A DNA stretch of 64,000 bases from Adineta vaga. Lineage: Eukaryota > Animalia > Rotifera. The notes beneath the pieces were generated by a model. The model saw only the letters and a list, made by a program, of their open reading frames with translations, had not been told where the DNA came from and did not search any database. The position numbers and the translations under genes were made by a program. Numbering within the stretch: the stretch's first letter is position 1; every line of letters starts with the position of its first letter. This document shows positions 37,671 through 43,891 of the stretch, one piece after another. The stretch is taken from assembly GCA_021613535.1 (NCBI GenBank), contig CP075494.1:7564001-7628000 (forward strand). Direction: 5' to 3'.

Positions 37671-38575
37671 TTAACTAGTGAGATATTCGGTGTCGTAGTA
37701 AATCAATAATTATAGACATGAAGATGCGTGATGTGATAATATTCCGACATCGTATTAATTGAATATTCTCTTTCATGCATAGTACTACTCATCTAGTACT
37801 CACAGATTCAACTTTGAGAATACTCACTAAGTTGTAAGTCTATGCCTGTATCTATGTCGTCTCTCGTTCTTCTTAGAATTGTTACGACGTGCTTTCCTCA
37901 CTTTTTCCGTCCAGTATGCTTCTCGGTTCGCGTTCTCTTGTCGTCCTTCTCTGTTTTTCCGTTTATATGTGTATGTTGCTTATCCTACGCGAAACTACAT
38001 CACATTCATTCCTTTTTTCTCCTTCTTGTCTTCTTCTATCAACAATGCCTCGTAACAATTTTTGGAAAAGAGAGAAGAGAAAAGCTAATATTAGAGAAAA
38101 GAAAAGAGAAAAACGATAAAGAATGTTCGTCAAAAAGAAAAGATCCGGAGAGAATTCTCTTGTTTGATGTTCAATAACAATTTCCTGTGTATTAGCAATT
38201 ACAATGAGTGATAGAATGATCAACTACTCAATTTAATATTTAACTCATCACTTCATAAAAAGCTCGTGTAACTGTTAATAATCCAACTGATTTATTCTTT
38301 GCTTGAATAGATTAGTTTTTTTAAATTACACAAGTAAGCATATACAGAGGAGAAGAAAAAAGATACTTGTTCTTTGTTAGAGAGACAGAGAGAAAGAAAG
38401 AAAACGGAGAACAATATGAAATTTGAACTGTAAACTACCGAAAAGAAAAAACAAACAAATTAATTTTCATTCGAAAAAAAGAAAAACAGAACACGAAAAC
38501 AATGAAAAAAAAACGAATAATTTAGCTCGAAATGATTGCATGGAAAACGTGAAGTTGAAGGGTTTTTCTCTTTGA

Positions 38576-41500
38576 TTAATATTTCGAATAAGACTAGAAA
38601 GAAAAAGAAATTTTAAAAATAAGTATAAAAGAAATAGAGTAATTATCTACCGATTTTGATCGTGTATAATATGAATGTGTCGGTAATGCTGTAAGGTTAT
38701 TACCCATTGTTGATTTACCACGATGAACAGCTTTGAATAAAACTCCTGCAACTTGTTCACGATTATCACTATCCGATATAGTCAACGTTGTTCCTGTATT
38801 ATTTGCTGTTGTAGTTAAATAACGACCAGTTGGATAAATTGGACTAAATTTCCGGGTAAAGGAAAAAAATCACAACGAGTTAATTCATGCGAAGAAAAAA
38901 TTTTTTAGTAGTTTTTTTTTATAATAGAAAAGAACTTGTGCTTGATTAACTCAGTTATTCTCTTTAGAAAATTCAATACGTACGTTTTCATCATCGACGC
39001 TGCTGATGAAATGTAAGAACGAGGCTTGCGAGTTGCTGAAGTAAAAAGAACATTAGAAGGTGTTGTTGAAATTGGTGCATAAAAACGACGTATACCAGCC
39101 GACGAGAAGTCCTGCATTGGAAGATTCATTCCTGATGGTGGTAACATTGGTTGTATATGTTGAAATGATGCTGATGAATCATACCTAATTAAATGAAATG
39201 ATAAATTTAGAAAAAAATATTCTTCTGAAATTGTTTTGAGCAACTATTCATGCAAATAGAGCAGTAAATAAATATTCAATATATATAATGATAATATTCA
39301 ATTATTGAAAATCAATAGGGAAATCACCAAAGATAAGTTGAATTGAAAGACTTTTCTCAATAGAGAAAAACATTTCAGAGCATAAACAAATGTCTATATC
39401 GGTACTAGATTGAGATATTTTCTAGATGTTAATAAAATTTGTACCTATTCCACATGATTACTGATCTTTTTTCTATCTCTAGAGAATCAGACTGTGTCAT
39501 TTCTAGATTTTGTTTCACACATATACGCATATTCAACAAGCAGCAAAAAAAGTCATTTCTTCCTGTTACTTCTAATAGTTGATCCATGCATATGCAATCT
39601 TTTCTCAAGTACCTATTGTTAATAGTAAAACTACTATTATTGTTATGTGTTCGAATTTGATGTAATTGTAATGCTTTTTTGGTTATAAATTTTTTATTAA
39701 TACATTTATTACATATCATTAATGATTGATTACCATTCCCATTTTGCTGATTATTTGTACGTGACTGATGACTTTTCAGATGTTTGTTTAGTGCCGATAA
39801 TGAATTATAAGTTTTAATACAATATTTACATCTAAAGTATGCTCTTTCGATTTTCTTTTTTTTTAAAGAAGAAGGGAAAAATCAAACTTGCTTTTATCTT
39901 TCTCTCTTATCAAGCTGATAGACAAAAAAAGAAAGTATATAAATCATTCAAACTTACATAAGATTAGGATGTTGATGTTGTTGCATACGTCTTGCTTTGA
40001 TTTCATTTAATCGATCGCCCTGAGTTATTTCACCTTCATTTTCTTCCTATATTAAACATATAAGAGGATAAATTCAATTTGAAAATCAAATACGTACTTC
40101 AATATTATTATTATCTCCAACTAAATATCGATATGAATTTGAATTGCCTATATCCATTGTTGCAGGAACACCATAACTTGTTATATAACGAGTTCGTTCT
40201 TTCGTTCGATAAATATCACCTAATGACCAAAGCCATGCTTGTTTTCTATAAATCATTAGGCCTTTTTTTTCAATGTCTAATTGATTTTTTTTCTTACTCT
40301 TCAAGATAATTTTGTTGTGGACCAATTACTGAGCCGGGCCGACATATTCTTAACCATGCAATAACTTCAGCGGCTGTAAATTTATGATGCTTCATTAAAT
40401 ATGCTCCAATTAATGTGCCTGTTCGACCAAGACCCGCTGTGGAAATACAAAAAAAAAGTTATTCGAATTTTTTTTTCTGTTTTATAATGGTTTATTGAAT
40501 TCACATTCATACCTTTACAATGTACAGCAACTGCACCTTTTGCTTGTTCAACAATAGTCAAAAATTTTAATGTTATTGCATCACTCGGTGTACTTCCATC
40601 AGAAAAAAATAAATCATAATGTTCAAAACCTGCATCAATAAATCGTTTTGCATCATAGAGTTTCTTGTTTAATCGCACAATCGTCGTAACATAACGTTTA
40701 CGAAAATAAGTAAAATAAGCTTCCGGTGCATGTAATGGATAACCCTTAAAAGAATTCATCAATGAATATCAACGGAAAGAATGAATGAAACTTACATTTT
40801 CAATTTTACTTTTCGAATGTGGACCTGAAAAAGCAAGTAATTTACGAGGTACAATCCAATTTAAATCACCATTTTCAACTTTCTATTGAAATCAAAGAAG
40901 AAATAAATTGTTTCTTTTTACATTAAGAAAAGAAAAAGAACGGGAGATAAGAGTCTCACTTCATAATGTTCATATTCATCAAGGTCAAAGTTTTCAAAAT
41001 CAAAAAATCCATGAAGTATTGCCTATATGTTAAAAGAAGCAAACAAGGTAAATAAAACGATTGTATAAAATAAGCAATTAACCTTATGAAGGCCTTGTAA
41101 AGTATCGAGTAATGTTAGATTATATGAAGATGAACCAAGTGATGCATCTCGAAATGGAAGAAATGGATGTGCTGAATTTATACCACTGATTAACGGTTTA
41201 TATGCTTCTTCCGGTGTTCGTTTAAGTTGAATAATCTATCAAAGAAAAGTAAAAGAGAATAATCAACTATTGTACGAATGAATTCATCACGACATATTTT
41301 GACATGTCAAGAATATTTAATCATGAGAGTTTTTCTTCTTACTACCATAGACAATTGAAATCTATTGTTTCGCGTTGACATATACAAATTTGTTTGTTGG
41401 CAACGAAAGAAACAAATTTCAATTTGAAGAAAGATTTTCAACTAGATCAAAACTAAATATCAAATTCATTCGTTACTCAACTAGAAAGAAAATATCTTCA

Positions 41501-42036
41501 TGCATGTCTTTAGTTTTTCCCTTCTAACATTACGAACAAATTGATTCTGTTCAAGAAATATTATCTGCATATATGATGAGATAACAAAATGACTTACGGA
41601 ATAAGCAGCAATTAAAAATGCAGCATTTGCTCGTTTTTTTGGTTCGACTTTTGCATAATGAATAATTCTTTTATGTGCTAAACTTGGACTCTAAATAAGA
41701 AACGATTATTAAGAATAGTTTCACTTTCTTTCTTTAACATACATTTAATTTTTTCTTCAATTTCGTACAATATTGATGAACAACTGCTAAATTTAGAGGA
41801 CCAAAATCGGAATAAAAACTAAAAGATGAAGAAGAATATGAAGAGAAATATTTTTTCTTTTAGTTTTCTTACTTTTCATAAGTAAATTCATCATCGATGG
41901 AAAAATAATGAGTACGTGCTGTTGATTTTGGTCTTAAACGTAATGTTGCAAAATAAAGACGATCTGGAATGATTTCTGATGCGCTACCGATAATGTCGGT
42001 TTCGCTAGTACCTCCTTTTGCATTGCCATCGGTCAT
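38576..42036 (-). CDS. CDC14: Dual-specificity phosphatase CDC14, multi-exon
   Basis: [47 protein letters not shown], catalytic AVHCK|[18 protein letters not shown] and TQGDRL. Confidence 0.95.
39613..39831 (-). CDS. 219-nt phase 2-2 exon encoding two C2H2 zinc fingers, within CDC14
   Basis: ctttag|A TGT AAA TAT TGT..AAT AG|gtac encodes [21 protein letters not shown] and [23 protein letters not shown], in frame with the flanking CDC14 exons. Confidence 0.75.
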
Positions 42037-43891
42037 TGGTTTTCGATAAAATATATTCAAATAATTTGTTCTTTGTCTTCGACGAGCACACGATTAATAA
42101 ATTAAGTTTGGAGAGAGAGAATGAGAGGAAAAAAACGAGTAATTACAATACCTAGACCGAGGAAGACTAGAATAAAATAGAATAATTAATGAAACGACAA
42201 GAAAGTATGTATCTACCTAGACGAAGAAAAAGAAGAGAAAAAAAACCTATCGATTTTAATTGTTCTGTCTTAAGGAAAGAAAGGCAAGAAGAAGAAGAAA
42301 AAAAAGAACGAATCAGTATCCGTTGTTAAGCGCCATTAACTACACAAATTGCCTCAGTAGATACCAACTCATCGGATCACATGTTTCGTATACTATATAG
42401 ATATTTTTTTTCGATCTGAATAAAGAAAACAAGACAAAAGAGAAAAATATTCTACTTCTATTTACTTTTGTACATTCTAAAATAATGATGAAGGTTAGAT
42501 GTCACTAAATGTCTCCTCTCGAGAAAGAATAGAGATGTGTATACAATTGAATCGAATTGACAGTTCAGGTGTGAAATGAAACATTTGCGGTAGTGTATGG
42601 TATTGCCTAATGATAGCATCTATTCATGCTTTTCGATGACAACCACACAACAGTTTGCTACAGAAAAAAAATTAAACTATAGAAATGAACATCAAGATCA
42701 GAGTTCGAACGTAAAAAAAATATTCTACACTGAATTGTGAAAGAAAATATCATTGAATACAGTCATTTTATAAGCAAATCATGCGTGATATTTTCCTTCT
42801 AGTTTCATTAGTAGAATTTCTAAGAAAAATAACTATACTAGTTTTAAATATACATTTGTAGACATTGCATGTTCTTCTTGAAATTATACTTTTGACAGGT
42901 CTCTCTATATAGTTCAAGATCTTAATTGCATTCTACCCAGAGGAGTATGATATCAAAACAATATTGTTTATTTTTTTCATAAACGTCTATTATTACTTCA
43001 ATAGATGACAACATACTCAAGGAGAAGAAACGCTTGAATGATAATAATGCGTGCAAACCATTTTCGTTTTTTTGGTCTGATTTCGAATGAATATTAGTCA
43101 ATTAGGGATGTAACGGTAACGGTGCACTATGGTTCACCAGTAGAAGAAGTCAGTTACCTTTACATTCTTAAATGTCTAACATAAACGATGGAAAATTTGT
43201 AAGCATGAGTTTTTCCTTCGATAAATTGATATTTATTTAGCGAGTACATATTCCTGAAGTGAAAACTACCATCGTCGACAACTTCTTCAAGTAAATTTCA
43301 GCATGTAATTGATTTCTCATCCTTCTTCTATGAATACTGCTTGATCGAAAAACTGTTAAACAAATAACCAAAAAGTTCCACTGAAAACAAGAACGATAGT
43401 TGTTTACAACAGTTTGAATAATTAGTGTGGATGAAAATATCTGTAATTTAGAAGATTGTTTATCAAGATCGCTCTAAATTTCACTCTCATCTTCTTACTA
43501 AAGTTTTTCATTTTCCTTTTTTTTTCGAGGAGTAAGAACGATTTTTAAGGAGAGAGACCAAATTTCTGGAACGAATCAACGTGCACTTTCAAGGAAAAAC
43601 GTCTCACAAACATTCAGGGGAGGAAGAGAAAGACTCCTCCCCCCTGTCGATAGAACACTAACTCATCAATCTCAAAGTCAAAAGTCTAATTGAATATCAA
43701 CACAATAATATTTTCGATATAACTCTTTCTAAATCACAATCTAAATTTTGTTTGCTACTCGAATCGAATGATCATAAATACGAATGAAAAACCTAAGATG
43801 TCGCTTCAAAATTAAATCAATTGAATGTCGTTGCTACGCAAATGTAAATACGGATGGCAAGAAGAAAATCGACTGTTACTTTCATCATCTA

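Follow-up and report, generated by a model that had tools for sequence, protein, structure and literature searches.

Does a CDC14 phosphatase gene in the bdelloid rotifer Adineta vaga carry an optional exon that adds two C2H2 zinc fingers to the enzyme, and would such an exon be a functional part of that gene? At mitotic exit CDC14 undoes phosphorylation by CDK, and in yeast and human cells it has a further role in DNA-damage responses; its site of action is governed by its non-catalytic parts. We analysed a window of 64,000 nt (contig CP075494.1, positions 7,564,001–7,628,000), for which an earlier note, made from the letters alone, had proposed a 219-nt, phase-2, stop-free cassette exon between exons E10 and E11 of CDC14. 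With a probability of about 0.8, our analysis supports a genuine alternatively spliced CDC14 coding exon: real, optional and ancient within bdelloids.

The host gene (Table 1) has 551 codons without the cassette exon and 624 with it, and every one of its introns is visible as a CT..AC joint in RNA contigs. DSPn (PF14671) matches fall in E1 (E = 1.5e-8), E3 (1.3e-6) and E4 (2.4e-11), and a DSPc (PF00782) match falls in E8 (E = 5e-7, an exon-sized score that lies below the whole-domain cut-off). E7 matches residues 202–278 of human CDC14A at E = 6.8e-35 and a CDC14B structure at E = 9e-32. The catalytic loop HCKAGLGRTG straddles E7 and E8, with E7 ending in ...AVAVHCK, the split codon giving A and E8 opening with GLGRTG, and it has the HCxxGxxR(S/T) form by which a CDC14 catalytic loop is recognized. 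The predicted protein is, on these matches, CDC14 with an ordinary core. Two further features of the gene are recorded here. An intron of 362 nt (41236–41597) lies in the DSPn part amid introns of 51–77 nt; its RNA depth is zero, so it is fully removed, unlike the intron after the zinc-finger exon. Inside E11, a 60-nt in-frame intron (39036–39095, minus strand; donor GCTG/gtatac, acceptor ttcag/C, the slash marking the splice boundary) is removed in three RNA runs out of four, at depths of 12–36, with the loss of 20 residues, among them a conserved 13-residue stretch.

Table 1. Features of the CDC14 gene around its alternative exon, in window coordinates.
Feature	Position	Strand	Description
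CDC14 phosphatase gene	38576..42036	-	ATG at 42036, TAA stop at 38576-38578; 13 constitutive exons
Exon E10	39958..40046	-	closes the conserved core; phase-2 end, CTT AT/gtaagt at 39958
Upstream intron, E10 to zinc-finger exon	39832..39957	-	126 nt; joint 39831/39958 in 4/4 runs
Zinc-finger exon, alternative	39613..39831	-	219 nt, phase 2 in and out, 73 residues, two C2H2 fingers
Finger 1	39768..39830	-	C-x2-C-x12-H-x3/4-H; exon-peptide residues 1-21; best Pfam stretch 1-21
Finger 2	39645..39713	-	C-x2-C-x13-H-x4-H; exon-peptide residues 40-62
Downstream intron	39185..39612	-	428 nt; retained in part of the RNA
TGCATATGCATG element	39585..39596	-	with GCATG at +24..+28 of the downstream intron; position conserved
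Exon E11	38984..39184	-	first tail exon, start aattag/G TAT GAT; skip joint 39184/39958 in 4/4 runs

The alternative exon opens at 39831 (ctttag/A TGT AAA TAT TGT) and closes at 39613 (AAC AAT AG/gtactt), so that the exon proposed in the earlier note is exact to the base when read on the minus strand. Its coding frame holds no stop and the other two frames hold 15 and 5; given the base composition of the exon itself, 72 codons without a stop have a chance probability of about 8e-4. The start of E11 takes either E10 or the zinc-finger exon in frame, and both inclusion and skipping are frame-preserving as had been claimed (219 nt, phase 2 at the end of E10 and at the start of E11). The exon peptide reads C-x2-C-x12-H-x3-H, then C-x2-C-x13-H-x4-H. 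A Pfam scan places it above the cut-offs of zf-C2H2_4 (29.8 bits, cut-off 27) and zf-C2H2_6 (26.8 bits, cut-off 25), which bears out the proposal that two C2H2 fingers are encoded, and PF00096 scores 21.8 bits, under its cut-off of 25.2. A chance open reading frame was also considered, and is ruled out by the open-frame probability together with an open frame in all 20 versions of the exon (described below).

Finger 1 has the classical spacing C-x2-C-x3-Y-x5-L-x2-H-x3/4-H; finger 2 is one residue longer ahead of its Phe and spaces its His as H-x4-H. The linker between them is variable at 6–20 residues, Asn/Gln-rich and not TGEKP-like, and the exon peptide is very basic (9–13 Lys plus Arg, 0–3 acidic residues, pI 9.5–10.1). 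An alignment profile gave weak matches to DNA-binding fingers, namely those of BCL11A, ZFP57 and the SALL4 two-finger cluster. In the AlphaFold2 model, which is of moderate confidence (mean pLDDT 63.5), helices lie in the expected places (residues 11–22 and 51–62), the second preceded by a short hairpin. Foldseek of this exon-peptide model against the PDB returned no match at E<=0.001; the best row, non-significant, is a Tramtrack two-finger peptide. Nucleic-acid binding by the fingers is a sensible guess, to which the basic peptide and the weak profile matches point.

Searching the 100.8-Mb, six-piece assembly with the exon gave a sole other good match, on C2 at 55% identity, the remaining matches having E of about 0.03. 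This match belongs to another CDC14 copy, where it too lies between E10 and E11; it is 198 nt long (L002:1500-1697) with phase 2 in and out, and shares with the window's exon the acceptor tttag/ATGTAAATATTGT and the donor AG/gtacttgaga. In A. vaga, chromosome 2 is the homoeologue of chromosome 5 (PMC8494291), and a search of the homoeologous CDC14 copy, suggested as a check on the exon, has found it in the corresponding place with its phase unchanged. The homoeolog also holds an extra open 150-nt phase-2 segment between its zinc-finger exon and E11 (L002:1917-2066, LFTRPLSPAAITDDEH...), flanked by ag/ and /gt and missing from the window's CDC14 copy. Relatives of this segment occur at L010:2518-2667 (82% identical) and, weakly, in both L006 and L011. 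Possibly the segment is a second symmetric exon.

Protein and metagenome searches supplied more than 20 genomic contigs of related bdelloid-like rotifers. Every fetched CDC14-bearing contig that spans this part of the gene has the zinc-finger exon between E10 and E11. There are 20 distinct intact versions, 195–228 nt long, all of them divisible by three, stop-free and with the same acceptor; all 20 also preserve the donor AG/gta and the phase match to E11. The flanking introns vary across loci, from 95 to 126 nt upstream and from 325 to 612 nt downstream. Alignment A1, of eight sequences, shows C1, C4, H17, C43, H57 and H62 to be invariant and C40 to be present in seven of the eight, L011 having Tyr in its place; the second His of finger 1 lies at position 21 or 22, and this zinc-ligand pattern is repeated in 12 further versions. 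The Tyr at the first Cys of finger 2 (MAYNKC) is found in L011, L012 and L013, contigs of different runs (exon L011:635-862), and exons of this type are still open, with splice sites and GCATG intact.

Pairwise dN/dS against the window is 0.21–0.71 for the zinc-finger exon, resembling that of the constitutive tail exons (0.24–0.61); the values for the core are 0.04–0.13, and for E10 0.03–0.16 across loci. A tree built without the zinc-finger exon resolves a B clade with the C2 copy (SH-aLRT 99) and an A clade with the window's copy (92), with several species in each. Since the exon is present in both clades, it is older than the bdelloid genome duplication. The earlier note had looked to conservation and selection in related genomes for a decision, and the 20 intact versions, the tail-like dN/dS and the invariant zinc ligands fall in its favour; they point to an exon kept by purifying selection in both homoeologs.

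One GC-rich lineage (~44% GC) departs from this pattern. Its A-type exon has decayed at L009:2129-2335 and L032:4990-5210, the rest of CDC14 being intact. L009 has CG for the acceptor AG and lacks both finger-1 Cys; in L032 the first Cys codon has become TGA and the donor is lost; GCATG is gone from both. The B-type copy L010, from a GC-rich genome, is intact. The decay has the look of relaxed selection and lends weight to the conservation seen at the other loci. The module can be dispensed with, since the A-type exon is gone from one lineage and a finger-2 Cys from another.

We examined splicing in contigs of four runs from four studies (X1, X5, X19 and X22) over window positions 38300–42200; all four data sets are spliced, and are thereby identified as RNA. 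Every run contains the skip joint 39184/39958, at depths of 21, 24, 49 and 55, and the inclusion acceptor joint 39831/39958, at depths of 13.9, 3.0, 35 and 20.6, so that two of the three junctions singled out for an RNA check were recovered. Inclusion is the minor form, at roughly 11–32% with both skip forms pooled, as judged by contig depth, which is a crude measure of isoform share. The proposal of cassette splicing is upheld for skipping and for the acceptor; the donor joint 39613/39184, however, is not among the best 15 of 17 joints listed from the contigs of the four runs.

On the donor side the contigs are of two kinds. X19 record 9 and X22 record 14 comprise exactly 39613–39831 plus 30 nt of E10, and depth drops at 39613 from 40 to 12 in X19 and from 25 to 0 in X22; a branch at the predicted donor would yield such ends. 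X1 record 2 (39158–39831), X5 record 19 and X19 record 8 continue across 39613 into the downstream intron, whose depth is 11.5–12.2 in X1 and X19 versus 0 in the long constitutive intron 41236–41597, so that the downstream intron stays in some of the RNA. When it is retained, the frame is open to a TAA at 39429–39431. The uninterrupted contigs, the intron depth and the absence of the donor-to-E11 joint from the best 15 could together be read as 39831 being an alternative acceptor with the downstream 428 nt retained, which would give degraded, unproductive RNA or else a shortened CDC14, made up of core, fingers and, in place of the normal tail, 61 read-through residues up to the TAA at 39429. 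We regard this as distinctly unlikely. The read-through frame is not conserved, since L006 to L008 have only 4 codons before a stop and the other loci have unrelated sequence, whereas the donor AG/gta, a length that is a multiple of three and the phase match to E11 are preserved in 20 of 20 versions, a pattern that makes sense only with splicing of the exon to E11. The X19 and X22 contigs, moreover, break exactly at 39613, where most of the depth is lost.

Two other observations come from the same contigs. A third joint, 39187/39958 (depths of 15, 0, 25 and 37), looks non-canonical on the reference. The RNA contigs that carry it also carry 39188 A>C (T>G on the gene strand), which changes aattag to aagtag and makes a tandem NAGNAG acceptor, aag/tag/G; the joint is therefore attributed to the other allele, using the upstream AG. 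That allele adds one codon, giving L-I-R-Y-D in place of L-M-Y-D. An X19 contig that starts from the E10 acceptor (40046) extends into 255 letters absent from the window, the first 30 of which map to C1:8195811-8195840 and, with one mismatch, to C4; we took it to be a chimeric assembly contig.

Inclusion as a minor isoform in all four runs would also be compatible with splicing noise, in which a pseudo-exon is spliced in at a low level and its product has no function, and so would the decay of the exon in the GC-rich lineage (L009, L032) and the replaced finger-2 Cys of L011. Against this, the frame is open in every one of the 20 versions at ~23% GC, indels come only in multiples of three, the zinc ligands are invariant and dN/dS is no higher than in the constitutive tail exons, all across a duplication that is older than the sampled species. 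Such persistence would be impossible without selection on the protein, and we consider noise highly unlikely.

The RNA joint bears equally on whether the segment belongs to CDC14 at all. The gap between E10 and E11, at 773 nt, is large for this genome, and prokaryote-style gene callers give the segment as a stand-alone ORF, both of which would suit a separate nested gene or a transposon within a CDC14 intron. We rejected this exceedingly improbable alternative because RNA contigs join the exon directly to E10 at a canonical acceptor (39831/39958), because the segment opens mid-codon at that acceptor with no 5' start codon, and because only two genomic copies exist, in the same place in both CDC14 homoeologs; no repeats or transposon features were seen. 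The possibility raised in the earlier note, that the exon might prove to be part of a transposon or of a separate transcript, is contradicted by the joint and by the count of two copies.

Several features suggest that use of the exon is controlled. Its donor is weak, AG/gtactt in the window, and across versions reads gtact-, with gtagt- in two. All 20 versions have a GCATG that begins at position +24 or +25 of the downstream intron; the 13-nt spacer ahead of it varies freely, and the background frequency of GCATG is 0.0005–0.0012 per nt. In 13 versions there is also a GCATG 32–50 nt before the acceptor, where the window reads GCAAG. The introns flanking the exon are unusually long, the 773-nt gap comparing with a typical ~50–77 nt here. 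By sequence, the weak donor, the long flanking introns and the fixed GCAUG mark a putatively regulated exon. Placed shortly after an alternative exon, (U)GCAUG forms the arrangement of RBFOX enhancers, which promote inclusion of the exon upstream of them. By analogy, GCAUG may here be read by an RBFOX-like factor, or it could serve another factor or an RNA structure instead. The genome yielded no hit to Fox-1_C (PF12414); the test is weak, because this domain is poorly conserved and the search was made exon by exon.

As an optional CDC14 coding exon, it most probably works as follows. The majority of transcripts join E10 straight to E11, and a minority use the acceptor at 39831, placing 73 residues after the phosphatase core and before the variable C-terminal tail, with the exon's donor at 39613 presumably joined to 39184. 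The exon originated before the bdelloid whole-genome duplication and has since been maintained by purifying selection in both homoeologs, and a GCAUG-reading RBFOX-like factor would promote its inclusion. The fingers may form a targeting module that brings the phosphatase to nucleic acid, to chromatin or to a partner protein. A more specific proposal, tentative and on balance rather unlikely, is that of a regulated, pre-duplication bdelloid isoform whose basic fingers would take CDC14 to DNA or chromatin (breaks, or replicating or segregating chromosomes), a GCAUG-reading factor setting its share.

We know of no described CDC14 with C2H2 fingers. A phmmer search with the exon against 1.84 billion representative proteins (clustered at 50% identity) gave 33 matches, none of them with any CDC14 core sequence, which is a weak blank; the matches are bdelloid-like read-through ORFs and ordinary multi-finger proteins, and a search among proteins of 40–126 aa returned three genomic read-through ORFs. 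We found no paper linking CDC14 and C2H2 fingers in one protein, again a weak blank, and nothing relevant to CDC14 in the literature on bdelloids and alternative splicing. As far as these protein matches and this literature reach, the fingers are foreign to known CDC14s, in agreement with the earlier note. A CDC14 core with an optional, lineage-specific two-finger module would be a known enzyme in a combination of which we found no record.

If true, a built-in optional zinc-finger module is a new way of directing CDC14. Bdelloids are known for surviving massive DNA breakage and for exceptional DNA repair, and a chromatin-targeted isoform, if true, ties a mitotic-exit and DNA-damage phosphatase to that repair. 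The locus also offers a compact case of what appears to be regulated alternative splicing in a very-short-intron genome, with a weak donor, a fixed GCAUG, both homoeologs and one lineage loss.

The module and its setting can each be placed beside known systems. Classical C2H2 fingers of the Kruppel/TFIIIA type share the spacing of finger 1, and zf-C2H2_4 and zf-C2H2_6 score above their cut-offs; unlike them, the CDC14 module is without a TGEKP-type linker, has x13 and H-x4-H in finger 2 and leaves PF00096 under its cut-off. RBFOX-regulated cassette exons of animals are matched by the GCAUG fixed at +24/+25 beside a conserved weak donor in all 20 versions, and by a second, upstream UGCAUG at many rotifer loci; they differ in that PF12414 is without a match in the rotifer genome (a weak test), the likeness here being one of sequence motif. 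Human CDC14A and CDC14B and yeast Cdc14 have the same DSPn and DSPc core and the same HCKAGLGRTG catalytic loop, and the human CDC14 genes have a variable C-terminal tail that is diversified by alternative splicing, as here. Unlike any of these known CDC14s, the rotifer gene optionally adds what reads as a two-finger module straight after the core.
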